This document shows positions 2,857 through 63,463 of a stretch of DNA of 64,000 nt, piece after piece. Made by a program: the position numbers and the translations under genes. The notes beneath the pieces were generated by a model, which worked only from the letters and a program-made list of their open reading frames with translations, searched no databases and was not told the DNA's origin. Each line of letters begins with the position of its first letter. The first letter of the stretch is position 1. The stretch comes from Neoconidiobolus thromboides FSU 785. Lineage: Eukaryota > Fungi > Entomophthoromycota. Location: the NCBI GenBank assembly GCA_025603075.1, contig MU626290.1, positions 82,987-146,986 of the forward strand, in the 5' to 3' direction.

Positions 2857-3346
2857 AACTTTTATAGTTTTAATAACTTTTTTAACTAAGTTTTTATATG
2901 TTTTGTAGCTAATGTTATTATTGATTTTTTAATTAAACCAAAGTTATTTATATCAAGCAAAAGTGTGTTGATAGTATTATAAAAAAAAACTTGAAATAAG
3001 GCAGTTAAATTATTAATATTATTAAAAACATGATTATTTTTTTTAATAGTTAATAAATTAGTTATAAAAAAATCATTAAACACTGTTAAACATGAAATAT
3101 AATAAATATTATCTGGTAATTTATAAAATTAGTTAAATTACTATTATTATTATTTTAACATTATTTAAAAATAATTATTTAAAAATGTATTTATTTATCT
3201 AAAAGTTTTATTAATAGCTTTTTTGCTTAAATAATACAAAATAAAAAAACCCAATTATTGATAGTATTTAAATAATAAATAAAACTGATGTTTTTTACAA
3301 AAAATAATCAACTAAATTAAACAACAGCTTAAAAATTTAATTATAT

Positions 3347-3444
3347 GGGGATGTGTTTTTGTATTTAAGAGCTTTATTAACAACTTTTCCACCCAAATAG
3401 CGCTTAAAGATGAAAAAAGTAATGAATTCAAAAAAAACATCCCC
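3347..3444 (+). mobile_element. MITE copy 4
   Basis: AT|GGGGATGT...ACATCCCC|AT, perfect terminal TIR with AT duplication. Confidence 0.92.
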
Positions 3445-3540
3445 ATATAATAAGAGTTATAAAAAAACAATATAAAGTTATTGTTACAATTGTAAAAACT
3501 TCTTTAGATATAAATATTAAATCTTATATTTAAGATGTGA

Positions 3541-7550: not shown

Positions 7551-7814
7551 TATTTAAAAGAGTAGCTGAAAAATTAAATACTTTAAGGGATATCAATTTA
7601 TAGAAGTGCAAACAAGTTTGCAAATTCTGACAAAACACTTGTTATAAGAATAGTAAATTGCAGCACTAAAGCAATCTTACTAGCAAATAATGGTCATTTT
7701 TGATCAAAGAAAGGATTTACTGTTGCAAGCGGCAACTTTTCACTTTTTGCAATAAAAAATAGGATTATTTTACTACATTCTTATATTTTCGATTAAATTA
7801 TAATAACAATATAT

Positions 7815-7905
7815 AGGGATATATTTTTAAGAGTTTTATTAGCAGTTTTTCCACTCAAATAGCGCTTAAAAAATGGAAAAAGTGATGAAACTAAAAAATA
7901 TCCCC
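7815..7905 (+). mobile_element. MITE copy 5 (small internal deletion)
   Basis: AT|AGGGATAT...ATATCCCC|AT plus family core. Confidence 0.85.
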
Positions 7906-9004: not shown

Positions 9005-9252
9005 TTTAATAGATGAACTGTTTAGTAAAAAAAGTTAATAATTATCTTTTAATATTGATATTCTTTTGAAATAATTTGTTACGTCACTATTGATTTCTAT
9101 CCTTAACAAACATAAATTCAGTAAAATTCTATTTATTGTTCTTTAAATGGTTGAACAAGACAAGACTTGTAAAAGAAATTATTTCTGCTATTACAATTAA
9201 TGAAAACGTTTAACGAAACATACTTTTGAATACTATTAATAAAATAATATAT

Positions 9253-9347
9253 GGAGGTATTTTCTAGCTTCATCACTTTTTCTATTTTTTAAGCGCTATT
9301 TGAGCAGAAAAATTGTTAGTAAAATTCTTAAACAAAAATATATTCAC
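9253..9347 (-). mobile_element. MITE copy 6
   Basis: Reverse family core, AT flanks; lies between the two nucleotidase genes. Confidence 0.85.
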
Positions 9348-9795
9348 ATATTCATTTGTAAGTTTTAATTTGGGAATATACTTTACATATTTGAGTCTTC
9401 ATTTAAAGCTTTAAAGGGAAGATAACTAAACTAATGATGAATTTATATAGAATAATATGAATACATATGGATAAGTTTAAAAGCTCAATTAAAATCAAAA
9501 GCAAAGTTCTATAATTCACTTTTTTTGTCCATTTCCCATGTAATGTAAAACTTAAAGACTATTAAATAAAACTAGATAAAAAAAGTCTCAGTAAATTATT
9601 TTCAAATTAAACAAAAAAGTAAAAAATTTGTAGCACTAAGTGCTTAATTTGTATTTTTCGCTAAAAATTAAATTATTTAAAATTTGAACCAAGCTTTTAA
9701 ACTACCTTATATACTTATGAATAAAATATTGAGATTAACAAATAAAAAATAAATTTTGCTTTATAAATAAACCCAAAGAAAAGCTATACAAAAAC

Positions 9796-15387: not shown

Positions 15388-16917
15388 ATGCCCGCCTTAG
15401 GAATTATTGATATTGGCTCCAATGCTATACGTTTTAGTATTTTAAATGAATTACGCCCTTGTTTACCTATGATTTATAGTGAAAGAATCAAGATTGCTTT
15501 ATTACCTGAAATTGAAGAGTTAGGAGAAATAAAGCAAGAGACGTTAAAAAATATAATCAATGATTTTAAAAGATGTAAGTTGATATTGGAGAGCTACGAT
15601 AAAGAGTATGAAATGAAATTAGTAGCTACGGAATCAATAAGGAATTTAAAAGATCAACTAAGTTTTATTGAGTTAATTAAGAAAGAATTAAATTGGGATT
15701 TAACAATATTAACCAAAGAAGAAGAATCCAAGATTACTAGTTTTGGGGTAGTATCTTGTATTTATAATGTCAATGGATTAATCTTTGATTTAGGTGGTGG
15801 TAGTTTAGAAATTAATTATTTAAATACCAAAGATAAGACTATTAAAACTCAACCACAATCTTTAACTTTAGGTTCCCAAAGACTATTAGCGTATAAAAAC
15901 GGAGAGAATGGAAATATAGAAGAGATTATTGAAAAACAATTAAAACAAGGTTTATTGGATTTAAATGAAAAAAAATTTCAATATGAGAATGTTTATTTTT
16001 CGGGTGGCGGTTTAAGAAGTATTGGTTATTTATATATTCATGAGAACAATATTAAAAATTTTATCATGAATGGGTTGGTTATTAAAAGAGATGAGCTTAT
16101 GGCTGTTTTAAATAGGTACATTTCAATGAAACAAGAAGATATTAATAAATTAGATATTCATCATATATCTAACCAAAGAAAAAGTCAATTGAAAGGTAAT
16201 TGTTCAATAGCAAATAAAGTATTACAATTATTACCTAATATCAATAATATTATATTTTCAATTGGTGGAGTACGACATGGATTAGCATATCAATTAATTG
16301 AAAATCAAACAATATCACCCTTTTTAGATTCAATTAACTATTTTTTAAAAAACAAATCAAAGTTATTTAAAGAAGTTGAAGAATATATATATATATTATT
16401 TAAAGATATATATCAACAATATAATGTTAATAATGAATCATTAAAAGCAATCATTAAATTATGCCAATTTTGTAATTTTTTAAATAAAGATCATTTAGGA
16501 CATTATTTATTAAATCTTCTACTTGGAACCGGTGAATTGGCTATGTGTCCGGGTATTTTAATTGAACAAAGATGTGAGTTAGCTATTTTATTAACTTATG
16601 TTTATGGTGAAAATATGGATATTAGTTTAATTAAATCCTATTTACCAATCAAGATTAAAAAACAGCGAGTTAAACAATTAAAATTATTAGGTAGGTTAAC
16701 GGAATTAATATTAGCTTTACAACCGTTAGCTTATAGTAATAAAGAATTTATGAAGTTGGAATCAAAACTGAAATTTAAGATTATTGATGAGGTAAACGAA
16801 GTAGAGATTACTTTTAAAGACTTGTTTTTAATAGCCAAATCAGAATCATGGAGAAAAAAGATGGATAAAATTAATAATATGGAGAATGTAAAGCTTAATG
16901 TATCTATTTTAGAATAG
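15388..16917 (+). CDS. RTG2: Ppx/GppA-family protein, Rtg2-like, intronless
   Basis: GIIDIGSNAIRFSI, FDLGGGSLEI, YFSGGGLRSIGY, GGVRHG match Ppx/GppA and fungal Rtg2 motifs. Confidence 0.8.
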   Translation: MPALGIIDIGSNAIRFSILNELRPCLPMIYSERIKIALLPEIEELGEIKQETLKNIINDFKRCKLILESYDKEYEMKLVATESIRNLKDQLSFIELIKKELNWDLTILTKEEESKITSFGVVSCIYNVNGLIFDLGGGSLEINYLNTKDKTIKTQPQSLTLGSQRLLAYKNGENGNIEEIIEKQLKQGLLDLNEKKFQYENVYFSGGGLRSIGYLYIHENNIKNFIMNGLVIKRDELMAVLNRYISMKQEDINKLDIHHISNQRKSQLKGNCSIANKVLQLLPNINNIIFSIGGVRHGLAYQLIENQTISPFLDSINYFLKNKSKLFKEVEEYIYILFKDIYQQYNVNNESLKAIIKLCQFCNFLNKDHLGHYLLNLLLGTGELAMCPGILIEQRCELAILLTYVYGENMDISLIKSYLPIKIKKQRVKQLKLLGRLTELILALQPLAYSNKEFMKLESKLKFKIIDEVNEVEITFKDLFLIAKSESWRKKMDKINNMENVKLNVSILE

Positions 16918-18481: not shown

Positions 18482-18808
18482 TAAGTTGAAATTTCAATCG
18501 ATTTAGTAGAAATATTAAAAATAAAAATATATAATAAATGATAAGATAATGTCGTTTATGAAATTGTATTTATCATGAGTTTATTGTTTTCAAAAACTTG
18601 AATGCTATTATTTATAAACGAAAGCACAAGTCAAATGACATTATAGAATAACTATAATTATAATTATACTCTAGAAAAAAACACTTTTTGTATTGTGCTA
18701 TACAATAAAACCATACTATTTATTTATGTTTAATATACTAATAAAATATGTCATTAATAAAAATCAGCTTTCATGAAAACTCTTGCCCTTGTATTTTATA
18801 AAAGATAT

Positions 18809-18906
18809 GGGTGCGTTTTTAACTTCATTACTTTTTCCATTTTTTTTAAGTGCTACTTAAGTGGAAAATTTGTTAGTAAAATTCTTGAACACAAAAATAC
18901 GTCCAC
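18809..18906 (-). mobile_element. MITE copy 8
   Basis: Reverse family core, AT flanks. Confidence 0.87.
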
Positions 18907-19249
18907 ATATAGTCAAAAATTAAAACTGAAAGTAATATTTAAAAATAAAATAAAATCCATCATTTTCAAAAATTTCAAATCAATAAATTTATAGTTTAAA
19001 GTTAGCTGTTTTAACTTTAATATTATTCTTAATTTACTATCATGTTATTAAGTTAGCGTTTAGTTAAAAAGATTGTTATAAAAAATCATGTCTTCTTCAC
19101 AATGCAATATCTAGAAAAAATGTCTAAAAAAATACTAAATAAGGTAAATATCATTAATGTAAAATACCAATAAATAAAGTTGTTAACTTTGAGATTAAAA
19201 ATCAAACATAAACTATCAGAAAAATTATGGTACAATCAAACTACTATAT

Positions 19250-19348
19250 GAGGATGTATTTTTTTGTGTAAGAATTTTACTAACAAATTTCCCACTTAAG
19301 TAGCGCTTAAAAAATGGAAAAAGTGATGAAACTATAAAAAACATTGCT
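19250..19348 (+). mobile_element. MITE copy 9
   Basis: Forward family core, AT flanks; shares private variants with copy 8. Confidence 0.87.
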
Positions 19349-19550
19349 ATATACTAATATAGAACATTGTTCTTTATTATGTTACCCATTGCATTTGTTA
19401 ACACCGCAATCTAAGCTACTATAGGAACCAATAGTCTTTTAAAACAAGGTGATGTTGATCTCTGTAGAGACACTTAAGGAGTCTTTGAGATTTCACTTTT
19501 AAATATCAATATGAAAATCCCTTAATATATAAAGATGAAGAAGAGAATAT

Positions 19551-19648
19551 AGGGATGTATTTTTAGATTTAAGAATCTTATTAACAATTTTCCCACTTAA
19601 ATAACACTTAAAAGATAGAAAAAGTAATAAAGCCAAAAAAACACCTCC
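19551..19648 (+). mobile_element. MITE copy 10
   Basis: AT|AGGGATGT...ACACCTCC|AT. Confidence 0.87.
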
Positions 19649-20832
19649 ATATTATACTTGGATAGGGCGAATACTACGATCCGTTTAAACCGTGGGAAGG
19701 GAGCAAAAATGGCTACGCACTTAAAATAACATGAATGTAAATGTTGGTGTTATAAGATGGTATGGATAAAATATTGATGTTAAGTTAATGAAGCATGAGT
19801 TTGATGAAGCATATAGTATTAAGTGTGATTATCGAACATACATCGAATTAACCAGAAATAGCAACCTTAGAGAGGAATTAAATAGGTGTAATAAGAATTA
19901 CACTAAACTTGAAGGCTTAAATGTACTTCTTTTGTTTATCATCCAATTTCATTAATGGATAACATTGCTAATGTTATTAGTAATACACATTTAATATTGG
20001 GCCTTCGTGTTTGAATTTTTTGATTTTAGGTTATCTATATCTAATAACATGTTTTGAAAAGCTAATTCTAATAATAGTCAACATTTTTTATAAGTATATA
20101 GGTATTTCAACTACTTTTAATTTCCAATTGTTTAATATACTAAACAATTTTATTTTGTTGATAATGCTTTTATTTTTTATTCAATAATGATGGGTGTTTT
20201 CAGAAACATAAATAGAATTTTAAAGAGTAAATTATTCATTAGGAAACTTAAATGAAATAAAAATGTAGTCTAAAAATAACTTGTTTTAATACAATCTTAA
20301 ATAATCGTACGTATGTTTTCAATAGAATAAAACAGCAGTTAAAGGCCATAAAGTTTATATTTATCTACATGTTATATAATAGTCTTATTATTTTGATATT
20401 TAATCTAATTTGATACTTATTTTATTTATCTTACTTTTTATTTTGATTAATTGTTTTAATAAATCAATTAATATAAAAAATATATCAATTTTAAGTTTTT
20501 GAAAAAAAATTCGTTACTTTGATATTCTTATTAGTAGACGTTAACATTTTGTTACTTAGTTGATCTTACCCATTTTGTTATCTTAGTTTAAATGTGGGTG
20601 TTAAAACGGTATTTGATTGGTGGAAAAGCATAAAAAACCAATCAAGTTTTTAAAAATTAGTAAAGAGGGAGGCTAAAGGTCACAATTAATCAAATGTATC
20701 ATATCAAGCTGGTAGGCTTTAAAAATAAATAGATAAACAGAAAAATTATAAATTTAGTCTTTTTTTTTAATTTTGAAAATTTTACTTTGCTATTTATTTA
20801 AAAGTTTTTATATTCAATTTCTTTCTTTAATC

Positions 20833-22959: not shown

Positions 22960-23964
22960 ATGAACGATATTCAATCTGATAAAGCAATAACTGAGATCTT
23001 ACAGTATTCTTCGCTTATTAAATACAATATTCTTTACGCAGTTATAGCACTATCAGTAATAGGCTTTATAATGAATTTTCTGGTGTTATTCTTTGTATTT
23101 CAACTTAAGGAAAAGAAGACGGTGGATACAAGGTTAGTAACCTCAATTGCTTTAGTCGACATAATAGCTTCGATTTCCACTATATTATTAGATGTACCAT
23201 TACTAATCACCAATTTCAATTTATTCTATCAACCATGGTTTCGAGTTTTGAATGGAGTGGTATTAAATGCTTTACATGCATCTTCACTATTACTAATTGG
23301 AATGTTAAGTTTAGAAAGATTTCTTTTAATTACTAAAAGTATAAGGCTTAAAGCATCTACTTGGTTTTCAATATCCTCTACATTAATCTTAATACTATGG
23401 TTATTGTATATATTAGCAGCCATTTTTAAAAAGATACGGTTGATGCCATCTGGAGCTTATTGTGAATTATTGATGTGGGAGGACAATATTAGTATGGCTT
23501 TTTACCTAATCACTTCACTTTTATTAACAATCTGTGGTATTGCTATGACTTATTTTTATTTAAAAATTATTTGTTATTCTAAAAAAATCAGTGTAGAACT
23601 TAATCATTTAACAAATGAAATCAACCGTGGTATACCTAATATCGGAGAAGGAATATGCAATTATTTAAATGAAAATTTAAATACAAATCCGGTCAAAAAG
23701 AATGATAAAGTGAATCGACGTTGTATTGTTTTTATAGTAATATACAATATTTGCTTTTTGCCGTTTATTGTAGCTTTGTTATATGAATTATTTAATGGAG
23801 ACCCCAATCTTCCAATGGATTGTTTAAATCCTATATCATTTGCTGCTACTTCCTGTTGTAATCCAATATTAACTTTATTACTGCATAAACCTACAAGAAC
23901 AAGAGCAATTCAATTTTTTGTAAAGAATAAACCAATTGTTGAGAATCAAACGAACAAAGTGTAA
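22960..23964 (+). CDS. Class-A (rhodopsin-like) 7TM GPCR-like protein, intronless
   Basis: Seven hydrophobic segments; TM3 end LSLERF (E/DRY-like), ECL2 GAYC, TM6 ICFLPF, TM7 CCNPIL. Confidence 0.82.
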   Translation: MNDIQSDKAITEILQYSSLIKYNILYAVIALSVIGFIMNFLVLFFVFQLKEKKTVDTRLVTSIALVDIIASISTILLDVPLLITNFNLFYQPWFRVLNGVVLNALHASSLLLIGMLSLERFLLITKSIRLKASTWFSISSTLILILWLLYILAAIFKKIRLMPSGAYCELLMWEDNISMAFYLITSLLLTICGIAMTYFYLKIICYSKKISVELNHLTNEINRGIPNIGEGICNYLNENLNTNPVKKNDKVNRRCIVFIVIYNICFLPFIVALLYELFNGDPNLPMDCLNPISFAATSCCNPILTLLLHKPTRTRAIQFFVKNKPIVENQTNKV

Positions 23965-24751: not shown

Positions 24752-24759
24752 TATAAATA
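24752..24759 (+). promoter_or_regulatory. Candidate TATA box of secreted peptide gene 1
   Basis: TATAAATA about 75 bp upstream of the ATG; the background is AT-rich, so weak. Confidence 0.35.
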
Positions 24760-24834
24760 CTCTACTTTAGCTTTCTTTTTATATCATACAATTTTAGTAT
24801 TTTAATATTTTAATATCTTACTACTCTATCTAAT

Positions 24835-25074
24835 ATGAAGTTTTCTGGTATATTACTCATAGTTACTGCTTTATCTGCTACCTCTGCTTTATCTATCCCT
24901 TCTAATATTGCAAGATCTTTTAGACAGGAAGCTAAGGATGTCGTTGTTCGTGGAATCGGTAAAAGTATTGTAGGTGCCCTTACCGATGTTGCTACTTCGG
25001 TTGTAGGCGATAAAGGTCTCATTGGTGGAGGTATTAAAGCTGCTGGTGGTCTCCTCCAAAAAATCATCCCTTAA
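24835..25074 (+). CDS. Small secreted prepropeptide, paralog 1 (79 aa)
   Basis: Signal peptide MKFSGILLIVTALSATSALS, pro-segment ending VVVR, amphipathic C-terminal 40 aa; ungapped paralog at 61834-62073. Confidence 0.85.
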   Translation: MKFSGILLIVTALSATSALSIPSNIARSFRQEAKDVVVRGIGKSIVGALTDVATSVVGDKGLIGGGIKAAGGLLQKIIP

Positions 25075-25397
25075 TTTATTCCTAGTTTAGTAAAATAAAT
25101 TAATATTAAGTAGTTTTAAATTAAATTATTATAAGATCTATTATTAAAAAGTCATAATTTAAAGTCTTCGATATATTATATCATGTAAAAAGATTATAAA
25201 ATTTTAAACGAAAAAAGAATATAAGAGACTATCATTATATACAAATACCATGTATTTAGTACAAAATAATGTATCAACTTAAATATTTTATTTGAATTCA
25301 CTTGATTATCAACTTAGGATTGCATTATTAAATTGCTTGTAATTTATTTTTAGCAATTTTTATTTTTTATTTTTTACTTATTTAAACTCCATAAAAT

Positions 25398-27578: not shown

Positions 27579-28927
27579 TCAATATCTTTCCTTAGATAGG
27601 GGATTATAATAATTAAAATTAGTTGAATCTAAAGGAAGATTAGTTGGTGGTGGTCGATAATAATTAGTACTATTATCTAGGCTAGATTGAGCTCGTATCG
27701 ATCTTCTAGAATAAGAGGCAAAGGTTGAATTAATAGAACTTCTACTAGAAATTTGAATACTTTGATGTCGATTTGGCGTTGTTCTACCTTTTTTTAAGAG
27801 TGAATGGTTAAATTGATTGTTACCATTGAATTGGGAGTAATTGCTTGAAGAAGAACTCATATAACTTTCGGTTATTGAATTTTTACGCTGTCTGTTGTAC
27901 TGATGCTTATTCTCATATTTGATTGATAGTATTGTATTTAAGTTAGGTAATGTCGGACTAGGTAACTTTAAATAACCCTCTTGATGATTCTTCATATCTT
28001 TTTGTCTCATTTCCTTTTGCCTTTGTAATCTTTGGTATGATAATAGCTTTGAGATTCTATTTTTAAGATAAGTAAAATATTAATTTAATATGAATTAAAA
28101 CTACCTTTTATCAATTTCATGGCAACAATATTCTTTTAAATTTCCTTGAATTTTAAATATTAAAACAATATATAGTAATGCAGCTAATACTACGAGTAGA
28201 GCAGTTATAATAAATAGAATATTGGAAATTGCCAAAGTTGCTAGAGTAAAGTAGGACAGTAATTTTGAACTTGAAAAATTATGAATACGTTCAAGTATTG
28301 CTGCTTCATTACCCCTTAACGAAATTAAAAACCTTATTAAAATATAGCTTTTTAACATTTCTCTACCGATATCTACTAATAAAAATCTTTTCCACCCTTA
28401 AAATAAAATTAGCATGTAAAATTAAAATTGTGATGAAAGCTACCTTTTAATGTAAAATAGATAAAAAAAGTGATACTTTCGGTCAATGTCCTCGGTTCAG
28501 CTAATTTTTTAAAAAAACAATAGTTTTTATAGTTGGTAAGTATATACAATCGATGAGCTATAACGTTTGTGTAAACAACCGATATATCTTTGGATTTTAT
28601 AATTTTATAAGACTTATATAATTCATAGGGGACTAATATAATTGAGCAAGATAAGGAAGCATAAAACACGTATGCAAACCATTTCTCATGATATGGTCCA
28701 AAATATAGATCTAAAGCTTTATCTCCATTGGTGATCAAATTAATAGTTGTCCATATATCTGAGCAGTACATCAATATAGTTTTAAATAAGATTAAAAATG
28801 GGGCTATATAGCTTAATTTTGTTATAATTCTTTCATCGTAAAATTGATCAATATCGATATAATCAAATTTAAAGTCAGTTATTGATTCTCTTTTCCAATG
28901 AGTATCCTTCCATTTTATCAAATTCAT
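27579..28927 (-). CDS. KCH1: Kch1/Prm6-family (low-affinity K+ uptake) membrane protein, multi-exon
   Basis: WKRESITDFKFDYIDIDQF, MYCSDIWT, FTLKGWKRFLL, GNLKEYCCHEIDKR; Ser/Asn-rich tail. Confidence 0.8.
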
Positions 28928-29359
28928 AAAAAATTTCAATTATAAAATTATAAAAAACTAAATAAATATATTGATGATAATATATATTGTAATTTTTATT
29001 TTTATTTTTATTTTTCTATATTTGTTAATTTGAAATTCTTTAGATCAATTAAGAGTACAGCCAATCACTTTCTTAGTTAAAATCGGATCACCTTGCTACT
29101 CGTTAATCAAGTATCATCTGTGGATATTCATTTAATTACTGCTAAAAATTTCATCTCCATCAAATTAAATTGATATCATTATTAAATATTCAGGTGCTAT
29201 CATTATAAATGCTGCTTTATTTAAAACATCATTAAAATGATACAGGATCGTAATTTAACCTTTAATTTAACATTCTAATAAACTTATTTTCCTAATTGAT
29301 TAATTTAGTATTATTACGTTATTAAGTTAACTTAAAATAGATAAACAATAGCACATTTA

Positions 29360-31571: not shown

Positions 31572-32088
31572 ATATTTTTTCCAAGTGTTAAACTTTCTGA
31601 AATTAGCTTAAGAAATAAAATTATAAAGCTTAAAAGTAGAAAGTGTGCAATTTTACCTAAAAAACTACATTTAGCTATTCTGATAGATTATTTATGATAT
31701 TCATAAACTTCTCTAGTTAGCTATACTACATCTTATTTATTACTACTATGTACATTAATGTCACTTTCATCACTTTGTTAAAATCTACAGCTAATTTTTT
31801 TTATATTTAAGTTATTTAAAGCTAGACTTTAGATATGTTTTTAGTACTTTTAAAATAATAAGCTTAAATTATAGCTATTATATAAAAAAATCACTACATA
31901 TACAACAGATAAAAATTAAGTAATTTGTTAATAGAACATTAATAACTCTACAATTAGTTTAAATACAATTTAAAAAATTTACTTCATATTATGTTAAAGC
32001 TTACTTTTATCAATAAATTAATATATTGTCATACATTAATGGGTTTTTTATGTCTAATAATTAGAGCTATTTACTATATTAAAGTTAT

Positions 32089-32186
32089 GGGGATGTTTCT
32101 TTGGCTTCATCACTTTTTCCATCTTTTAAGCACTATTTCAGTGGGAAAATTGTTAGTAAAATTCTTAAATACAAAAATACATCCCC
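32089..32186 (-). mobile_element. MITE copy 12
   Basis: GGGGATGT...ACATCCCC, reverse core. Confidence 0.9.
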
Positions 32187-32243
32187 TTATCATCAAGATA
32201 TTTTCATAAATTTTTATTAAATTATGAAACTATAATTTTATAT

Positions 32244-33951: not shown

Positions 33952-36474
33952 ATGGTGAACTTAACTATGGACAACATTCGTGCTATGATGGGCAAGCCAT
34001 CTAATATCCGTAATGTGGCTGTTATAGGGCACGTTGACCACGGAAAATCTACATTGGTTGATTCTTTAATATCAAAGGCTAGAATCGTTCCAACAAATAA
34101 TACTAGAAACACCAGTGGCACTGTCATCAGTCAAGATAAGCAAGATCAGTATAATACTAAATCTACTTCTACTCCTTTACACTTTGGATTGCCAGAGGAG
34201 AGTACGAAAATTATTAACCAAGAAACAAATGGTGGTGAATTTTTGGTCAATCTAATTGAGCTGCCAGCATATACTAGCTTCTCAACAGGAATAGCTAATG
34301 CACTTCGAGTTACTGATGGCACCTTGGTTATTTTGGATTGTATCGATGGTTTATGTGTACAAACAGAAAGTACTTTACGTCTAGCTCTTACTGAAGCAAT
34401 CAAGCCTATATTGGTCCTAAACAAATTAGATCGTGCTATATTTGAGCTTCAACTTGAAAAAGAAGAACTTTATCAATCTTTACGCCGTAGAATCGATAAT
34501 TTCAATATAACTATCTCTACCTATACTGATAATGAATCAGGAACTACTCGAGTTGATGCAAAAGATGGAACAGTTGCTTTTAGTTCTGGTCTTGGTGGAT
34601 GGGCCTTTACTCTTCGTCAGTTTGCTGAAATCTATTATAAGAAATTTGGTGTCGATAAAGAAAAACTTATGAAAGTCCTTTGGGGCGACTATTATTATAT
34701 CCCAGAGTCCAAAAGATGGATTAACAAAGCTAATGCTTCTGATAATAACTCCTTGGAGCGTAGTTTTAATATGTTAATTTTGGATCCTATTTATCGTATT
34801 TTTGACACAGTAATGAATTCTAAACGCGGTGAGCTTGAAAATCTACTAGAAAGATTAAATATACAACTCAACAATGAAGAGAAAGAGTTAAATGGAAAGC
34901 CTTTACTTAATATAGTTATGCGTAAATTTCTACCTGCTTCTGATGCGCTGCTTGAGATGGCTGTCATTCATCTTCCATCACCTGTTACTGCTCAAAAGTA
35001 TCGTGCTGCTACCCTTTATGAAGGACCAATTGATGACGAAGCCTGTACTGCTATTAGAAAATGTGATCCAAATGGCCCTTTAATGGCTTATATATCTAAA
35101 ATGGTACCGATTTCTGATAGCGGCCGTTTCTATGCTTTTGGTCGTATTTTTTCAGGTACTGCTCGCTCAGGTCTTAAAGTGCGTATTCAAGGCCCTAACT
35201 ATATCCCAGGTAAAGATGATGACCTTTTTATTAAACCTATTGAGAGTACTATCCTTGTGACAGGACATTATTTTGAGTCTATCGAGGATTGTCCAGCTGG
35301 TAACATTATTGGTTTTACTGGTGTTGATCAATTTCTTCTCAAATCTGGTACAATTACTACTTTAGAAACAGCTTTTAACATCAAAACTATGAAATTTTCT
35401 ACTGCATCTGTAGTACAAGTTGCTGTTGATGTTAAGAATCCTGATGATTTACCAAAGCTAATTGAAGGCCTTAAACGTTTATCCAAGTCTGACCCACTTG
35501 TACAATGCTTCACTTCTGAATCTGGTCAACATATTATTAGTGGTACCGGAGAGTTACACCTTGAAATGTCTATCGATGACCTTCAGAAAGAATATACTGG
35601 TGTACCTATTAAAGCTAGTGACTTATCTGTACAATATTGCGAAACAGTTCAAACTGAATCTCTAAAATCAAATTCATCTGAATCCCCAAACAACTATAAC
35701 CGAATTTATATGAAAGTAGGGCCATTAGATATGTCTATTGTATCAGAGATTGAGAAAGGAAAAATTAGCTCAAAAGACGACGATGAAGCTATCTCTCGTT
35801 ACCTTTTTGAGAACCATGGTTGGGATATCAATGCTGGTCGTCGTATATGGTGTTTTGGTCCAGAAGATGCTGGAACTAACCTTTTAGTTGATGAAACTAA
35901 AGACATAACATACCTTTCTGAAATTAAGAATTCATGTAATAGTGCTTTTCAATGGGCGACCAAGGAAGGTGCTTTATGTGGGGAGAAGATGAGAGCCACA
36001 TGTTTTAATATCACTGACGCTGTACTACATGCTAATGCTATTCATCGTGGTGACGATCAAATTATTCCTATGTGCCGCCGTGTTATCCATGGATCACAGC
36101 TTAAAGCTGAGCCGACATTACTTGAGCCTGTTTATTCGGTTGAGATTGAAGTTCCAAACGAGGTTTTAAGTAGTGCACAGTCACTAATATTAAAACGTCG
36201 TGGGTACATAGAAAATATAGCTGAGGGCCCAGGTAATCTTGTCTCTATCCTTGAAGGTTACCTACCTGTCAGTGAGTCATTTGGTTTCCATGAAGCCTTA
36301 ATTTCGAGTACCCGTGGTAGAGCTTTGCTAAAACTTACTTTTAGTCATTGGAATGTAGTTCCTGGTTCCATTTATGAACCTGGATTAGTATCCTCAATTA
36401 TCTTTAAGATACGTGAACGCAAAGGGCTCAAACCAGAGATTCCATCGCCTAATGACTATTTGAATAAGCTATAA
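33952..36474 (+). CDS. EFT2: Divergent, intronless elongation factor 2 paralog (840 aa) with degenerate GTPase motifs
   Basis: Colinear with eEF2 over the full length (GHVDHGKST, ALRVTDG, NKLD, GWAFTLRQFA, EGLKRLSKSDP, GTGELHLE, AFQWATKEG, AIHRG, YLPVSESFGF) but DSPGH reads ELPAY. Confidence 0.93.
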   Translation: MVNLTMDNIRAMMGKPSNIRNVAVIGHVDHGKSTLVDSLISKARIVPTNNTRNTSGTVISQDKQDQYNTKSTSTPLHFGLPEESTKIINQETNGGEFLVNLIELPAYTSFSTGIANALRVTDGTLVILDCIDGLCVQTESTLRLALTEAIKPILVLNKLDRAIFELQLEKEELYQSLRRRIDNFNITISTYTDNESGTTRVDAKDGTVAFSSGLGGWAFTLRQFAEIYYKKFGVDKEKLMKVLWGDYYYIPESKRWINKANASDNNSLERSFNMLILDPIYRIFDTVMNSKRGELENLLERLNIQLNNEEKELNGKPLLNIVMRKFLPASDALLEMAVIHLPSPVTAQKYRAATLYEGPIDDEACTAIRKCDPNGPLMAYISKMVPISDSGRFYAFGRIFSGTARSGLKVRIQGPNYIPGKDDDLFIKPIESTILVTGHYFESIEDCPAGNIIGFTGVDQFLLKSGTITTLETAFNIKTMKFSTASVVQVAVDVKNPDDLPKLIEGLKRLSKSDPLVQCFTSESGQHIISGTGELHLEMSIDDLQKEYTGVPIKASDLSVQYCETVQTESLKSNSSESPNNYNRIYMKVGPLDMSIVSEIEKGKISSKDDDEAISRYLFENHGWDINAGRRIWCFGPEDAGTNLLVDETKDITYLSEIKNSCNSAFQWATKEGALCGEKMRATCFNITDAVLHANAIHRGDDQIIPMCRRVIHGSQLKAEPTLLEPVYSVEIEVPNEVLSSAQSLILKRRGYIENIAEGPGNLVSILEGYLPVSESFGFHEALISSTRGRALLKLTFSHWNVVPGSIYEPGLVSSIIFKIRERKGLKPEIPSPNDYLNKL

Positions 36475-36533
36475 GCAAGTTTCAAAAATTTATTAATAGT
36501 TATAGCATTATAAATAACTAGTAATTATAATAT

Positions 36534-36633
36534 GTGATGATGTTTTTTTTTGGCTTCATCACTTTTTTCATTTTTTAAGCATTATTGATCGGAAAGATTG
36601 TTAGTAAAGTCCTTAAACAAAAAATAAATCCCT
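36534..36633 (-). mobile_element. MITE copy 14
   Basis: Reverse core, about 60 bp after the eEF2-like stop codon. Confidence 0.83.
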
Positions 36634-37126
36634 ATGTGCTACTAATAAAGCTTTAAAATATTTGCTCGACTTTAGACTTTTAAGTTAAACACATGATATA
36701 TGGTATCTATAGACATCTGGCTATATTATTTGAATAAATATAAAATTGAGATGGACCTGAAGTAGAGCTATTAGTTCTATTTTTTTAATATTAAACCTTA
36801 AAATCTAGAATATATCAAGGAAATTAAACTTGTTTATAAATAGTTGAAACTAAAAGGTATGGTAACAATAGCCTTAAGATATTTTTTATACAGGTAAAAG
36901 AACAGAATAGTAGACTTGTGAAAGTATTTTAATTTATTTCATCTTTAGATTTAACAATGTGATATTACAATATCATTAATAACCATTGATTTATTCCCTA
37001 TCAATAATTTTTATCGATTGAATGAATTTTAACTAAATATCAGTTTTATAAAAAATAAAATTATTATCTCATAATTGACAAATAACTCAAATTCTATGAG
37101 AGTTCAGACGATTGTTTAAGCTATAT

Positions 37127-37221
37127 AGAGGTGTTTTTTTATTTTATTACTTTTTGCATCTTTTAAACACTATTTGAGCATAAAAATTGTTAGTAATTCT
37201 TAAACACAAAAATATATCCCT
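37127..37221 (-). mobile_element. MITE copy 15
   Basis: Reverse core, AT flanks; shares a 2-nt deletion with copy 2. Confidence 0.83.
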
Positions 37222-37360
37222 ATATACTAACTTAATACAGAATAAAATTTAAAATTAAGTACTGACTACATAATAAATACTAAATAAGTAACAAATGAGT
37301 TGTTCTTAAACTTTTATTTTAATTAATTTATGAAAAATTAATACTAAGTCTATTACAAAT

Positions 37361-39807: not shown

Positions 39808-39837
39808 TTTTATACCAGTCCCTTTTTCCTCCAATAT

Positions 39838-39927
39838 GGGGATGTATTCAAGAATTTACTAACAATTTTTCCACGTAAAATAGAGCTTAAAAGATGAAAA
39901 AGCAATGAGGCAAAAAAAAACATCCCT
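39838..39927 (+). mobile_element. MITE copy 16 (small internal deletion)
   Basis: AT|GGGGATGT...CATCCCT|AT, 30 bp downstream of the tRNA. Confidence 0.87.
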
Positions 39928-40272
39928 ATGTTGTAAATCTATAAATTATCCTTTTACTTAATTTAAAAGCATTGACAAAATCAAATGAATTATATATTCT
40001 GGTAATAAACTTTAATCTCAAGATGTAAATCATTTATTAGATTATATTACAATAAAGTAGTATTATGTTTCCTAATTCATCAATTTCATAAAAAGTAAAT
40101 CCAAAGAATATAAAAAATAAAGTGAAAAAGTTAAATAATTATAACTAATCTTAATAGCAATTTATTAACTTTACATCAAACCTATTCTACTTTTACTTTA
40201 GATTACTATAAACGTTAGTAAAAATAACACCAAGTTATTAACCATGTGCTGCTTCCATTTAGTACCCTTGCA

Positions 40273-43470: not shown

Positions 43471-45585
43471 ACTTATAAACAATATATACAAAAACAAAAA
43501 AATAACAAAGAAAAATAGAAGTGAAATTATTTTTTATAAAATACTTACGTTATAACTGCTTATATATTAAATTCAGATGATGAACTTAATTAAAAATTTA
43601 ATATTTGAATTAATGTTTTGGTTACCATGTGAGTTAATTTATACTGTTTTATCTTCAATTTTAGCTAAATTCTTATTGTAATTTTACTTTTTAGTGGTTT
43701 TTTTTAAGATTAGTTAATTTAATATTGAAATTGCACCATCGCTTATAGAATTGGCATCATTTTCAACTTGTATTTTTAATATTTCTTCTTTAAAGGAATA
43801 GAAAGATTATTAAATTATAAATAAATAACTTCACTTACTAAATCACGTATTTTTACCCTTAAATCCCTTATCATTCTACCAAATTTCTAATTTTTAAGAA
43901 GTTTCAAATAATAACTTGTTCATTTTGCAACATTAACATATCAAATTTTATTTAAGTTTTGCATCATCTTATATCAATGTTATTCTATAAATAAAAATTC
44001 AATATATAAATCATATAAATTATATAGTCATTATTGTAATAATTATATAAAAAAGATGGATTAAATATAACAATAATTTGAGTTTGCATTGTTAATAATA
44101 ATATGTCAAAATCGGAATATGAGATTAGTAAATTTAATTGACAGATTATCTAATTAAAATAAATTCAATATAGAGATTAGTAATCTTATACTCAAATTTT
44201 GACATTTTTATTTCTCTTATTTTATTTCTATTTTTTACACAGAAGACAAACCTTATTTTCAATAATTTTTTATTATAAAGTTAGTATTTAATGTCTATTT
44301 TATTCAATTTTAATAACCACTTTTTATAAAATAATATAGCTTACTATTAAATCTTATACTTACTTTAATAATCCTTTTATTTATCACATATCTTTCTTAA
44401 TATTTTATTATTATAAGATCCCTTAACTATAAATTATAATAGAACCATAAAATTAGACCATCAAATCATTTAATCAACTAAATAATATATAAAATTTACT
44501 TTGTAAATTAAACATTAGAATTCAAGTTATAATTTGTTACCTTATACATATAGTTTACAATATTAGAAGACTGTTGTTAGCGCGCTATAATGTTATTCAA
44601 ATTTAAAGAATATTCACCATCAAAAAATACTCTCGCTGTTATTTTTGCTGCTTTTTTTTTCTAGATTTTTTATGCAATTAATAAATTCAAAATAACTGTG
44701 AATCTTAATTAGCAGTTTCCTGCTATTAAAAAGCTTAGCTAACTAAACATTAAAGTGGAAGAAAAACCAATTTCCTTCTGTCTGGTATCTATCTCTCCAC
44801 TCACGATTTTATTTAAATATGTAAATTAGCCACTATTGAGTTACTTGTATCTTAAGAATATAAAAATAATTATGCAAATAGTAATTAAAATTATTTCTAC
44901 CGAGCTATAAATTCTAGACGGAACTTTAATTTTACAACTTTATGCTATGATTTTATTGGTTGATTTCAAAAAAGTAAAGTTGAATGGAAATAAATAATTA
45001 TTTATTTTTATTGCATCTAGTCCAGAGTCCTTTAATTTATAAGTCCAAATACCAACTACTAAATTTATAATGTTGAGGTTGATTGTTACAGTCATCAAAA
45101 TTTTATATAGCTTTTTAGTATTTATTTTTAAGATAGAATAAAATAAGTGTAAATTTTGTGAATTTTTATTATATTTAGTCCAGGTTTCTTAGATCGAAAC
45201 ATTAAATATTTAGTAATTGACATTTGCACTTATAAATCATTGATATGGTCATAAGAAAGGCCGTGAAGTTATTTTGTAATGATTTTTTTAATAACTCAAT
45301 GTGTAAGAGACTGTACCTTTGTTGAAGATTAAATGAAGTTAAGAGAAATCGGAGAGAAATCAAAACGGAATAAGTCTTCAGTGAGGAGAAATACTAAAGG
45401 TAAACAGGTTAGTTATATGGAGAACTTTGACGATTTATCTTGAATTTTGCAATATTTTAAATTGGAATAAAATAATAATATGGGCAACAATGAATAGTTA
45501 TCTATTGTTGAAATTGAAAAAATAATGTTAAGTCTATTTAACTAAAAACAAATGATAATTTATATTATACATAATATTAATATAT

Positions 45586-45681
45586 GAGGATGTTTTTTTT
45601 GTTTAAGAATTTTACTAACAACCTTTCCACTCAAACAGCGCTTAAAAATGGAAAAGTAATGAAATCAAAAAAAACATCCCC
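45586..45681 (+). mobile_element. MITE copy 17
   Basis: AT|GAGGATGT...ACATCCCC|AT. Confidence 0.9.
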
Positions 45682-45872
45682 ATATATATATATAATTTAA
45701 TTAATATACAAATGATGAAATGTATTGAGTTCAGTCATAAACTAAAACAATTATTGTTTTGTCAATTAGATGAAAATAACTTTTTACTACTTTTTCATAT
45801 CTTAACGCACACTTGTAAACTAAAATCTCCTTACTAATCAAAATAACTAACAATAATGATTATATTTCATAT

Positions 45873-46613: not shown

Positions 46614-49033
46614 ATGGCAGAAAAAAGAGTATATGTTGTTAATTATTATGATCGTAACAGTCATAAAAATGATTGTGAAGAAACCAATGCTAATGGAAAA
46701 CTTAAATATGCTAAGGCTATTTTTAATCCGGATTTAGATGAAGGTAATAAATCTATTCTTACTATATAAGTCATGATAGAAATAAAAAATAGTTTTGACA
46801 TAATTACTGTTATTTAATTCATTATATATATATATATATATGCGTGTTTTAATTTTACTAATATATTAATATTATAATTAAGGAATGTGGCTAATGCTTA
46901 AATTCAAATAGGTACTGCAATAAAACTAGCAGAAGAGAGGTTGGAGAAACTTAATGAAAGTTTTAGATTACATATTAGAAAGGAGATGATAAAGAATCCA
47001 TTTACTGATTTAAGAAGTTTGTTTGAAAAGTATCAATATTTTATGAAAAAAATTTATCAAGATTTAAATTTATTACCACCAATTGAAGTATTAACTTTTA
47101 TTCAAAGAAACAAAAATGTATTAGGTAAATTACCAGAGAGGTTTAATCCAAAAAAGCATCCAAAGCCAATAGTTATAAATTCAGGTAATTATGTTATTAC
47201 AACTGTATAATTTTGTATAATATTTTATAATATTTTATAATAGATTTAATTAAAACAAATCAAATGGAAAGATCAAGTATGTTTTTAAGTAATTTTTTAC
47301 CAAATAAAATCAAAAATAGTAATGAAGTAATAAAGAAGAATGGATTATTTGGACCACAAACATTTACAATTGATAAATTACAAAATAAATTTCAAGAAAA
47401 TTTAAATAAAAATAAAATAGATGATTTAACAGAACCTATTGAAAGTAAAGAATATACATTTGGTGGATCAAAAATCCAGGTTATTAAATATCCGAATGGT
47501 ATAACTAAAAGTCAAGTTATTGAAACAAAAAATAATACTGATTCAAATAAGATGAATAAAGAGAATCAGAATAATATGTTCGGAAGTAATAATAATTCAA
47601 ACCATTTCTCAATGGAGAATGGAAAGTTAAAGTATAATGGTTTATTTAATAACTTTACACTGGAAAATAATAATAATAATGAAACTTCCAATTTCAAATC
47701 AATATTTGATACTACATTTAATGATGATAAAACAAAAATAAAATTAAACAATAAAGATGAATGGGAAAATAAAACAGAAGAAGAAAAATATGAAGAATTT
47801 ATAAGAGTGCAATCCATTTATAGTAAATATAAAAACAACCCATTAGAAGGTATGGATTTTAAAACATTAATGAATATAAAAAATAAAGAAGATAATAAAG
47901 AGAAATTGGAATTTAAATCCATATTTCATAATAATAATAAAAATAGTATTCATGAAAATATTAAAGAAAATTTAAATTTAAATTTAAATTCAACATTTTC
48001 AAGTAATAAAAGGATGTATAATGACAAATCTAATTTTAATTCAATATTTAGTGATATTAATAAAGAAAATAACAATGAAAGTAAAGAACAAATTAGACTT
48101 AATCCAATATTTAATAAACAATCAAAAGATAATACTAATTTTAATCAAATATTTGAAGATAATATAAAATCAAAGGATTATAATAATACAAATATTATAA
48201 ATAAAGATAAATTAAAATTTAATGGAATATTTAATAATAATAATAATATAAAGATAAATAAATTAGAGGATATTAATAATAATAATGAAGAGATTGATCA
48301 AACGATTGATCGAATGGCAGTTTCCTTTAATAATTTAAATTTATTAGAAAATAAAGAATCAAACAGAACAACAACGACATTAAATAATAATATTAGTAAT
48401 ATTTCAATTAATAAAGATACAACAACAACAAATTCAATTCATGATATTAAGAAATTGAATTTTAATTTTAATTCATTACAATTACCTTCTATTTCAGATA
48501 AAAAAAGAGAAAATGAATTAACTTTTAATGGAGATTATGAAATTCCATCAGAAATAGACATTAAATTTAATTCATTTAATAATCAAGAAACAGAAGAAAT
48601 AAGATTAAAAAATGAATCTAAAAAATATATTAATCAATTAAATTTGATTAATAATTCATTAAATAATATTACTAAAAATAATAAAAATAATACATTTAAT
48701 GGATTTACTAATATGTTCAATAATAATGATAATAATAATTTGAATGGAGTTTCTAATTCATTAAAATCAACTTTTGTTTCTTATTTTACACCTTTTAATA
48801 ATAATAAAAATGGAAAAATGAATGATAATATTGAAATTGAACCGGAAACAAAAGAAAATTTAATTCCAGTAACTTATCAACTTAATAAATCCTTTATTGA
48901 AAATGAAACAACATTAAATAAACAAATAAATCATTTAAATGGAAGAGAAAGAGAGAATAATGAAGAGGAAATTAATGTTAATAATAATAATAATGATAAT
49001 AATAATAATAATTTAGAAGATATTGATGAATAA
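46614..49033 (+). CDS. Nup50/Nup2-like N-terminus followed by a long Asn-rich disordered region; 3 exons
   Basis: MAEKR...DRN start and LEKLNESFRLHIRKEMIKNPFTDLRSLFEKY recall Nup50/Nup61 motifs; 589-codon low-complexity last exon. Confidence 0.5.
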
Positions 49034-49129
49034 ATATTATTATCTAAATTATAATAATAAAAATTAATTATTAACTTTATATGATTTTAATTATTCATTG
49101 ATTAATTATTAATTTTATTTATTTAAACT

Positions 49130-49309
49130 TTAATCTTCCCATAAAATTTCAATTAATTGTAAATAAATTGAATCATTAAAATAAATTGGTGAATATAATA
49201 AAATATCAGGCCATAATAAATATTTAAAATAAAATTGAGATTCTATTGATGGTTCATAATGTAATAATTTCATTTCTTTAGACTAAAAATAAAAAATAAA
49301 AAATAATGA

Positions 49310-49343
<34 letters not shown>

Positions 49344-50342
49344 TAAGAGTATAATAATTAATAACTTACCAATTCATTATCAAATATCATAGTTCTTAAT
49401 AAATTCGAAATTTTTAAGGTAACTTCTTCCACAGTAATAGAATTATTATTATCCTGATTATTATCCAAAATCAATTGAAATGGTTTACAAAACTAAAAAA
49501 AGGAGATAATTTAATATTTGATATTTAACAAAAAAGAAAAAACTTAATATTATATTTACCTGTTTCAATCTTATTGTAACTTGCTTTATGAAGGGGTGTT
49601 TTTCAAAAGATTCAATTAAATTTAAATTTTGTAATAATCCGTAAATTAAATTAGTAGCTTGAATTTTTTGTAATTGAATATTTAACAATATAGAATGAAA
49701 TAATAAACAAATTAATTCTTCATAATTATTAATACCAATTAGTTTATCTTCTCTTCTTTTTTCAATATTTTGTCCCAATTTAATTCGTTTCTTATTAATT
49801 AATTCAATAAATCTAATAAAAAATTAATATAAGAATTGTAAGAATTAATTAGAACTTAATTATTGAAATGAGATAAAATTAGAAATAAAAACTTCCATTA
49901 TTACCTAAATAATTTTTGAACTACTAAGGAAGTTAAATTATTACAATAAGGTAATATATTTAGTAAGGTAGCCATCCCTATAGAATAAGCAAATTGATCC
50001 TAATATTAATTAAAATTAGTAAATATAGATTCAATTATAAAACTATACTGTATATTATGTTATATATATTATATATTATATATTATATATTACTAACTTA
50101 TTAAAATACTTACCCTTGGTTCATTTAAATAATGAGTACTATATTTAATTAAGATATGAATCGTTAAATCAGATAATGGTAATTCCATAAACAATCGTGA
50201 AGTTAACCAAATTGGGGGCAGAATAGACTAAAAAATTCGATTAAAAATATTGATATATTTAATTAGCCATAAAAAATTGAAATAATACTACTTTAGTAAT
50301 ATTAGAATAGTATTGTCTATTTATTTATTTAAATAGTTGTAT

Positions 50343-50392
<50 letters not shown>

Positions 50393-51807: not shown

Positions 51808-51860
<53 letters not shown>

Positions 51861-51975
51861 CTTACCATAAAATAATAGTAAAAAATCAATAAAATGACCA
51901 TTAATTAAATAATAGTTTAATATTAATATTAATATAAAACTAATATTAAATGTAATTAATTTTAATTCACTAATA

Positions 51976-52006
<31 letters not shown>

Positions 52007-61775: not shown

Positions 61776-61785
61776 TATATAAAAA
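61776..61785 (+). promoter_or_regulatory. Candidate TATA box of secreted peptide gene 2
   Basis: TATATAAAAA about 50 bp upstream of the ATG; weak in an AT-rich background. Confidence 0.35.
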
Positions 61786-61833
61786 GTCATTGTTCTTCAA
61801 CCTTTAAACATTAATCAACTTCAACTATTAACT

Positions 61834-62073
61834 ATGAAATTCTCTTCATTACTACTAACTTTTACTGTACTTACTGCTACTTCTGCATTTTCTCTACCTA
61901 CCAAAGTAACACGTTCTTTTAAACAGGAAGCTAAAGACTTGATGGCACGTAGTGCTGTTAAAGATGTCTTTGGTGCTCTCACCAATGTAGCTACTTCCAT
62001 TGTCGGAGACAAAGGCCTTATAGGTGGTGGTGTTAAAGCTGTCAGTGGCCTTCTTCAAAACGTTATCCCTTAA
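61834..62073 (+). CDS. Small secreted prepropeptide, paralog 2 (79 aa)
   Basis: Signal peptide, pro-segment ending DLMAR, amphipathic 40-aa C-terminus; 50/79 identical to paralog 1 with no gaps (my count). Confidence 0.85.
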   Translation: MKFSSLLLTFTVLTATSAFSLPTKVTRSFKQEAKDLMARSAVKDVFGALTNVATSIVGDKGLIGGGVKAVSGLLQNVIP

Positions 62074-63463
62074 ACTTAAGATACCTTGTTAATGTACTAA
62101 TATTTTAATCTTAATAAATAATTTTGATATAATATTGAAGGTCTTTTGTTAGTATATGGGTTAGGTAGTGTTTTTAAAGTTTAGCACTATGCTATTGTTT
62201 GGTTGTGTTCGTGATAAGAAATTTATAGTAATAAAATATATTTTAAAGATTTTGGGACATAAATGTATTATATATGATTATCTAAATGCAGCATTTTGAA
62301 CGATTAAAATTACATCATCATAATATTTTATTTTAAAATATTAATTCAAACAATATCCTTTATTATTATTATAACTTTTTATACTTTTACCTTTTAAATT
62401 TAGCTTCAGTTCTAGTTTATCCCAAAATGTGCTTTTAAATTAATAAAGAGTAACATAGCTATGTAATGAAAAGGATTAGAATTCATCAACATTGTCTGTG
62501 TAAACAACATACGTAAAACCACTATATAATCAATCAGACATAAATGTAAAAAGTCAATTCATCCTGTTATCTTTATTTGATTAGCTCTATATTTATTTTA
62601 TATATGTTGTTCCTATAGAAACCCTTACAAATAAAGATCACTTATAAAAGAAGCTAACAATTAAATTTTTTAAATAATGTGATTAAATCAAACTTTGTAA
62701 TCTGTCTTCAATTACCTCAATGATGAAAAAAATACAAAAATAAGATCATTTGAATTCCATACATTTCTTTTTCATAATATTATAATATCATAAAAAGATG
62801 TATTCTACTTCAATATTTTACATTTTTTTGAAAATTATAAAATTTAGTTTTACCTAATTGTATAGACTTGGTTTATTTACCTTATTCACTACTTGTGGAT
62901 AAAGACCTTTTTTTGGACAAAATGCTAGTATGGAAGTGAGAGTGCTTTATCGAATTTCTTCGAATATCAAAAAGGAAAACAATTATATATGAAAAAGTCT
63001 GACTCATAGACATAGAGTTATTAAATTTAAATTATGCTTCAACATTTTTGAAATTATAATTCAAGAGCTTTTTTTGGTTATAGAATAACTTATAGCTAAA
63101 GGGTATTGATTAATTTGAATATTACAAGGTTTGAATTAAGTAAATAATCAAATCCCTTTGAAATCAAAATTTAAGTTTGATACAATAGTCCAATTATAAT
63201 ATCTTAGTTATACTTAACTTTATCTTAAAAATTATAATATAACATCAATTCTTTAATAGAAGTAACGCCAAAATATATTATAAAGGCCCCTTGTCTTGAA
63301 CTTCCTGCTTTATTGCTAATTAGTTGACCAAATAAATATTCTCATACTATTGAAAATAGATTTACCCATTACTTAAGTATTAGTGCCCATTTTTTATGAT
63401 AGTCCATTTAAATATTTAGATTGAAATAAAACTTATCGTATGATAATATTAATTGAATCATAA

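Follow-up and report, generated by a model that had tools for sequence, protein, structure and literature searches.

What is encoded by two short open reading frames (ORFs) that lie 37 kb apart in a contig of Neoconidiobolus thromboides FSU 785, and would their product be a small peptide cut out of a larger secreted precursor? The DNA in question is a stretch of 64,000 nucleotides (contig MU626290.1, positions 82,987 to 146,986 of the forward strand), to which we refer as the window. The first-pass annotation of the window described the two ORFs as intronless paralogs of 79 amino acids (aa) that align without gaps at 50/79 identical positions, and read them as prepropeptides with a signal, a pro-segment ending at Arg39 and a 40-aa helix-hinge-helix peptide. 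Translation and BLASTP agree with the description of the genes, and our analysis favors another reading of the product. We propose that the two genes may encode a lineage-restricted secreted amphipathic polypeptide acting physically at a membrane or hydrophobic surface, an explanation to which we would give an even chance of being right. The two coding sequences (CDSs) are as follows:

24835..25074, + strand: copy 1, complete intronless CDS (from the translation; first start codon past the upstream stop; 79 codons plus stop)
61834..62073, + strand: copy 2, complete intronless CDS (from the translation; 79 codons plus stop)

Both copies begin with ATG, and the distance from start to start is 36,999 bp. 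BLASTP aligns the two proteins without a gap at an E-value of 1e-37, with 50/79 identical residues and 63/79 positives. At the nucleotide level 167/240 positions are identical, and the identities at codon positions 1, 2 and 3 are 57, 71 and 39 of 80, respectively; the third codon position is the most diverged, which is the signature of translated sequence. The Nei-Gojobori method gives a nonsynonymous divergence (dN) of 0.24, a synonymous divergence (dS) of 1.19 and a dN/dS of 0.20, and hence points to an old duplication under purifying selection. By segment this ratio is 0.19 for residues 1-20, 0.26 for residues 21-39 and 0.18 for residues 40-79. The G+C content (GC) of the CDS is 41% in copy 1 versus 21-22% in its 500-bp flanks, and 40% in copy 2 versus 20-22%. 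We compared the two neighbourhoods using blastn and tblastx and found the similarity confined to 24826-25074 and 61825-62073, i.e. from 9 bp upstream of the ATG to the stop codon. Both ORFs open with MKFS and share the same stop, where the DNA similarity also ends. Since the DNA homology is limited to the CDS region, further exons and a recent segmental duplication are both unlikely, and we rejected segmental duplication as the origin of the pair, only the CDS being common to the two loci. No third copy or fragment was found by tblastn within the window.

Could the two ORFs have arisen by chance, or be decayed relics without a product? What speaks for this is that no homologue was found in any database searched and that the ORFs are known from sequence alone. 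It would, however, leave unexplained two intact ORFs of equal length despite a dS of ~1.2, a dN/dS of 0.20 and a divergence biased to the third position, a CDS GC twice that of the flanks, and a homology whose limits coincide exactly with the start region and the stop codon. We consider a chance origin scarcely conceivable, as the BLASTP match, the codon-position divergence and the dN/dS effectively refute it, and conclude with high confidence that both ORFs are genuine paralogous genes under purifying selection. They are small genes of a kind easily missed by annotation, as had been remarked of them, and paralogue conservation alone suffices to recognize such genes. Pyrimidine-ending codons make up 87% of the four-fold sites in copy 1 and 78% in copy 2, compared with 68-74% in two other genes of the window, an elongation factor 2 (EF2)-like ORF and an amino-acid transporter, and 33-64% in six other ORFs. 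This bias hints at translational selection and possibly at high expression of both peptide genes.

The two proteins can be laid out as follows:

24835..24894, + strand: copy 1 residues 1-20, signal-peptide-like N-terminus by the (-3,-1) rule
61834..61893, + strand: copy 2 residues 1-20, signal-peptide-like N-terminus by the (-3,-1) rule
24895..24951, + strand: copy 1 residues 21-39, basic amphipathic segment (charge +2; highest moment; dN/dS 0.26)
61894..61950, + strand: copy 2 residues 21-39, basic amphipathic segment (charge +3; high moment)
24952..25071, + strand: copy 1 residues 40-79, Gly/Val/Ile/Ala-rich amphipathic segment with a VGDKGLIGGG centre and a C-terminal Pro (moments; 27/40 identity)
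61951..62070, + strand: copy 2 residues 40-79, Gly/Val-rich amphipathic segment whose halves share an 11-residue motif (moments; internal motif)

In both copies the N-terminus has Lys2, a hydrophobic core at about residues 5-13 and a c-region rich in Ala, Ser and Thr, and small residues at -3 and -1 would permit cleavage after residue 18 or 20 under a rule that is heuristic only. Residues 1-20 look like a secretory signal, much as the signal of ~20 aa proposed earlier, and we infer that the proteins are secreted. An X-Pro dipeptide stands at residues 21-22, right after the predicted signal cleavage, and Pro22 is conserved. Neither protein has a Cys or an N-glycosylation sequon. Residues R27, S28, F29, Q31-D35 and R39 are invariant between the copies, and the last 40 residues are identical at 27 of 40 positions with the VGDKGLIGGG block invariant, all of which bears out the conserved RSF.QEAKD...R pattern, the invariant centre and the lack of Cys in the first-pass annotation. 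Its charges are confirmed as well, with +2 for residues 40-79 in copy 1 and +1 in copy 2; the post-signal chain of 59 aa carries a net charge of +4 in both copies. The dipeptides KR, RR, KK and RK are absent from both proteins, all basic residues being solitary. The 11-residue motif recurs in both halves of the C-terminal region of copy 2, with 6 identities (shuffle p 0.002), and may be the trace of an internal duplication; the corresponding comparison in copy 1 is not significant (shuffle p 0.92).

Is this chain patterned as an amphipathic helix? We calculated the Eisenberg moment at 100 degrees for residues 40-57 and 62-79 and obtained 0.38-0.42 for copy 1 and 0.40-0.45 for copy 2. Only 0.2-0.9% of composition-preserving shuffles match these moments overall, for each half of each copy (a fraction of 0.002 for copy 2), and the earlier claim of two amphipathic halves, which we place at residues 40-58 and 61-79, is supported. 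The moment at the beta-strand angle is low, at 0.04-0.16. Local moments, taken over windows of 11 residues, are higher within residues 21-39 than anywhere else in the protein, at 0.6-0.76. The power spectrum has its peak at 90-100 degrees in segments 22-39, 40-58 and 61-79, and residues 22-79 taken together give one peak, at 90 degrees, which means that the three segments share a phase. Residues 21-79 differ between the copies by 22 substitutions, 20 of which leave a hydrophobic residue hydrophobic or a polar one polar (57/59 positions overall), and therefore selection preserves the pattern and not the residues alone. The mean Eisenberg hydrophobicity is 0.34-0.38 for the 40-mers and up to 0.48 for the halves. 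By a helical periodicity above the composition expectation the chain may be placed with the linear amphipathic alpha-helical membrane- or surface-active peptides, which form a functional class and not a homology family.

We also predicted the structure using AlphaFold2. The post-signal chain of 59 aa was modelled as an unbroken helix over residues 3-57, with a predicted local distance difference test score (pLDDT) of 68.5 from a two-sequence alignment. This helix, of modest confidence, has neither a hinge at GDKG nor a break at Arg39. The model of the full 79-aa form was unusable (pLDDT 55). The predicted helix seems compatible with the periodicity and may be taken as weak evidence for it.

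Do the proteins have relatives elsewhere? Both were absent from an exact-sequence look-up in 15 billion sequences. A word-indexed homologue search of 5.8 billion clusters, run with the full protein and with the aligned 40-residue regions, gave no match, and a full HMMER profile search of 1.84 billion representative proteins of any length gave 0 matches at E <= 0.001. Pfam returned noise only for the 79-, 59- and 40-residue forms at E <= 10 (ABC-3 and GCP6_N, below cut-offs), as did NCBIfam, and the PDB searched by sequence with the full protein and a 40-residue profile returned nothing, or noise at E > 0.5 (the copper chaperone for superoxide dismutase). Foldseek with the 59-aa model found 0 matches in the PDB, as expected for a lone helix. 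Back-translated patterns matched among metagenome, bacterial and archaeal genome and viral contigs, none of them confirmed by tblastn, and no paper matched the peptide substrings in the literature full text. We also ran tblastn with both peptides against the two EF2 loci of Neoconidiobolus thromboides, each extended by 10 kb in both directions, and observed only noise and no related ORF. Syntenic loci sought in metagenome contigs through the neighbouring G-protein-coupled receptor (GPCR) gene revealed no peptide locus. The family was called undescribed at first sight, and no known sequence or structural family matches it.

Based on these data, we propose the following mechanism. The two genes would be the products of an old duplication, restricted to one lineage. 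An N-terminal signal of ~18-20 residues would be removed, leaving a chain of ~59 residues, Cys-free, unglycosylated and of net charge +4, which would form one long or segmented amphipathic alpha-helix with Val, Ile, Leu and Ala on its non-polar face and mostly small Gly, Ser and Thr with sparse charges on its polar face. In water the chain would be mostly without structure; on meeting an interface it would fold there and bury its hydrophobic face. Candidates for this interface are a lipid membrane belonging to another organism and, on the side of the fungus itself, its wall, its spore or its air-water surface. We prefer a mature product of ~59 residues, with an N-terminus that may be trimmed further, e.g. 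after the lone Arg27 or Arg39; no feature of the sequence sets Arg39 apart. Because the 59-mers share a charge of +4 while the 40-mers differ, the parts appear to compensate each other in charge, which speaks for the chain as a whole as the unit of selection. The moderate hydrophobicity, the low charge density and the many small residues would suit a low-selectivity membrane-perturbing peptide or a surface coat better than a highly cationic peptide selective for bacteria. The product might be a toxin, an antimicrobial or a surfactant, and the sequence does not discriminate among these roles.

Several observations weigh against this explanation. Selective antibacterial peptides do not typically have so low a charge density, and Gly at 18-25% together with beta-branched residues disfavours a helix in water. 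The structure models are of low confidence (pLDDT 55 and 68.5, two-sequence alignment), the signal peptide is judged by a rule of thumb only, and the codon-bias argument uses only ~50 four-fold codons in each gene. Fungi very commonly have small secreted proteins that are orphans, and for most of these no role is known. The term lineage-restricted stands for absence from predicted-protein and metagenome collections, and related fungi may hold unannotated copies. The explanation as a whole is drawn from sequence.

The nearest competitor is the prepropeptide of the first-pass annotation, in which the signal is removed, residues 21-39 are cut away after Arg39 and a 40-residue cytolysin, antimicrobial or surfactant is freed. 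Arg39 is indeed invariant, and conservation is highest in the 40-residue region (27/40; dN/dS 0.18), with its two amphipathic halves and an invariant Gly-rich centre that could act as a hinge; moreover, monobasic processing exists in eukaryotic secretory pathways. But the KR or RR site is absent, and Arg27 is just as invariant as the lone Arg39. Residues 21-39 are net basic (+2/+3) and not an acidic neutralising propiece, they are the most amphipathic stretch, and they are nearly as constrained as the rest (dN/dS 0.26 vs 0.18), while the periodicity and the AlphaFold2 helix run on through Arg39 and GDKG. The charge of the 40-mer is low and unconserved (+2/+1), whereas both 59-mers carry +4. 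We consider it more likely that residues 21-39 belong to the mature chain. Lacking a dibasic site, and with a basic segment and an unbroken periodicity in its way, the release of a 40-aa helix-hinge-helix at Arg39 seems unlikely to us. An alternative of another kind would be a non-secreted small protein held by an uncleaved N-terminal signal anchor, with its amphipathic remainder lying on the membrane surface. The hydrophobic core and the Ala/Ser/Thr-rich stretch together span ~15-17 residues, which would suit an anchor, yet the core itself is short, and in both copies a c-region of the classic small-residue type, offering several (-3,-1) sites, comes after it, and then the conserved Pro22. 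The rest of the chain is charged every few positions and has no second transmembrane segment, and we regard an anchor as very unlikely.

The genes next to the two copies raise one more alternative, that of a secreted hormone- or pheromone-like signalling peptide sensed via a class-A-like GPCR:

22960-23964, + strand: intronless rhodopsin-family seven-transmembrane (7TM) gene, 334 residues (Pfam 7tm_1, E 2.4e-14)
57626-58922, - strand: multi-exon G-alpha gene, divergent from copy 2

Copy 1 lies 870 bp downstream of the 7TM gene on the same strand, and copy 2 is the divergent neighbour of the G-alpha gene, from which it is separated by an AT-rich spacer of 2.9 kb with no ORF >= 60 aa. The best solved relatives of the 7TM protein are the somatostatin receptors 4 and 1 and the neurotensin receptor 1 (E 1e-8 to 1e-3, weak), and many peptide ligands of animal GPCRs are amphipathic helices of 27-44 residues. 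On the other hand, there are two loci only and the association was noticed post hoc, early-diverging fungi can hold many GPCR and G-alpha genes, the PDB matches of the receptor are weak and generic for class A, and the Gly/Val-rich, low-charge composition is more like that of an interface binder than of a specific ligand. A co-conserved peptide/GPCR pair was not found, neither the peptide nor the GPCR having relatives in the contig collections searched. The G-protein-signalling neighbours of both copies could be a coincidence or a functional link, and we see in a signalling role a faint prospect. If it were true, an early-diverging fungus would sense secreted helical peptides through class-A-like GPCRs, and we know of no description of such signalling in fungi outside the Ste2/Ste3 pheromone systems. 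We keep to a secreted amphipathic polypeptide of ~59 residues acting at an interface as the best explanation.

The immediate surroundings of the two genes contain candidate transcription signals:

24752..24759, + strand: TATA-like motif of copy 1, 83 bp upstream of the ATG (weak evidence)
61776..61785, + strand: TATA-like motifs of copy 2, 56-58 bp upstream of the ATG (weak evidence)
25094..25099, + strand: AATAAA of copy 1, 20 bp past the stop (weak evidence)
62113..62118, + strand: AATAAA of copy 2, 40 bp past the stop (weak evidence)

The window has 3.6 TATA-like motifs and 4.7 AATAAA motifs per kb. Those at the two genes are plausibly spaced, and the TATA-like motif of copy 1 is compatible with a promoter, but they carry no weight because such motifs are too frequent in this AT-rich DNA. 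A scan for bacterial promoters and terminators at both genes gave a background level, which is irrelevant to a eukaryote. Antisense ORFs rich in Pro, Thr and Ala overlap both copies (24810-25067, - strand, 85 aa; 61821-62012, - strand, 63 aa); they are most simply a by-product of the sense-strand codon composition and not genes. A very acidic ORF without a Pfam match starts at 25398 (+ strand), 324 bp downstream of copy 1.

The window as a whole has a GC of ~24% (15-36% locally) and a eukaryotic gene content, with EF2-like, 7TM, F-box/leucine-rich-repeat, amino-acid transporter, mitochondrial ketoacid-dehydrogenase kinase, Ppx/GppA-domain, G-alpha and KCH genes and one transfer RNA gene, tRNA-Leu. 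The EF2-like ORF (33952-36474, + strand) is intronless, encodes 840 aa with all EF2 domains present and matches fungal EF2s almost exclusively, the best matches being those of Neoconidiobolus thromboides (60%) and of Massospora cicadina and Entomophthora muscae (57-58%). An exact look-up of its protein gave no record. Canonical fungal EF2s share 73-91% identity among themselves but only 55-60% with this ORF, and this uniform distance indicates a divergent paralogue or a fast-evolving lineage. The host is thus probably an early-diverging fungus, which may stand close to Entomophthoromycotina. The Ppx/GppA-domain ORF (15388-16917, + strand) has 509 aa, and an ORF at 28409-28939 (- strand) has the KCH fungal potassium-channel domain (PF16944, E 1e-29). 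An Asn-rich low-complexity ORF of 589 aa (47264-49033, + strand) without a Pfam match borders an extremely AT-rich region with few genes (48000-54000, 15-19% GC), and copy 2 is in the same AT-rich half of the window.

We also observed a dispersed repeat of ~105 bp with at least 20 copies in the window, 75-87% identical to one another. An AT-rich core bounded by terminal inverted repeats that contain G/C gives it the look of a miniature inverted-repeat transposable element. Two copies in the same orientation flank copy 2 of the peptide gene and one abuts the tRNA-Leu gene; the repeat is not specific to the peptide genes. Example copies are at:

1694-1804, 2388-2484, 3342-3453, 7810-7898, 9249-9353: ~105-bp repeat
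18805-18913, 19234-19357, 19545-19656, 32055-32190, 36523-36635: ~105-bp repeat
37122-37229, 39834-39929, 45578-45694, 61044-61151, 63457-63558: ~105-bp repeat

What would such a family add? To our knowledge, few linear, Cys-free, ribosomally made amphipathic peptides are known in fungi. The fungal cases that we compared, candidalysin and the Rep1-type repellents, are polyproteins cut by Kex2, and a single unit of 79 aa without dibasic sites would add a different genetic design. If the host is of the entomophthoralean type, which only the nearest matches of the EF2-like gene suggest, the peptides could bear on the handling of host membranes, competing microbes or spore surfaces. We see the value of the pair in a well-defined candidate rather than a demonstrated function, and a toxin, a surface coat or a signal would each be compatible with the sequence. 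It is possible, though in our opinion doubtful, that early-diverging fungi have here their first family of linear cytolytic or host-defence-like peptides made as a single unit and without Kex2.

How do the two genes compare with known systems? They were said to share an architecture with candidalysin, the beta-type phenol-soluble modulins, the bombinin/maximin precursors and Rep1, and we found that the precursor features which define these systems are missing here; the analogy is one of physical chemistry only. Candidalysin, which is released from Ece1p in Candida albicans and close relatives, is, like the predicted products here, fungal, ribosomal and secreted, a Cys-free hydrophobic or amphipathic helix of low net charge with Gly in its interior. 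Ece1p is described as a polyprotein of 271 aa that carries a signal peptide and seven KR motifs; Kex2p cleaves it first and Kex1p then does the trimming (PMC5784256), whereas here we have a single unit of 79 aa without a dibasic site. No relationship to the Ece1p family emerged from searches with the window's own proteins, through which alone the likeness was assessed: the profile search of 1.84 billion representatives had 0 matches at E <= 0.001 and the word searches were blank. The Kex2-processed repeat proteins, which include Rep1 of Ustilago maydis, have a signal peptide, to which the signal-like N-terminus here may correspond, followed by short amphipathic peptides that are thought to be active at hydrophobic surfaces. 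They are characterized by a signal peptide and highly repeated cores between Kex2 sites, and are common in Zoopagomycota (PMC7329392). The proteins in the window differ from them: each is a single unit lacking a Kex2 site, and internal similarity amounts to a weak motif confined to copy 2.

Outside the fungi, the frog bombinin/maximin precursors resemble the two proteins in giving Gly-rich amphipathic helical peptides from signal-bearing precursors. In frog skin-peptide precursors a conserved signal comes before an acidic propiece with a dibasic site at its end, and two peptides are often present, whereas the intervening segment here is basic (+2/+3), there is no dibasic site and no Pfam match was found at E <= 10. 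The beta-type phenol-soluble modulins of staphylococci are similar in being helical, amphipathic and surfactant-like, with ~40-44 residues and a low charge. They come, however, from bacteria, lack a signal peptide and leave the cell through an ABC transporter of their own, while the present proteins have a eukaryotic host, a signal-like N-terminus and no match in Pfam or NCBIfam. The closest analogue in layout, compared by description only, would be the single-unit insect prepropeptides of the melittin/cecropin type. These are alike in size, in having a signal, a short segment and one linear helical peptide, and in their flexible centre, and the X-Pro at residues 21-22 recalls pro-regions trimmed by dipeptidyl peptidase. 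The melittin/cecropin-type peptides are of animal origin, much more cationic and usually amidated at the C-terminus via a terminal Gly; the C-terminus here is Pro, and the Pfam, PDB and protein-database searches gave no match. Taken together, the two genes bring to a known kind of molecule a sequence family and a precursor design that are both new.

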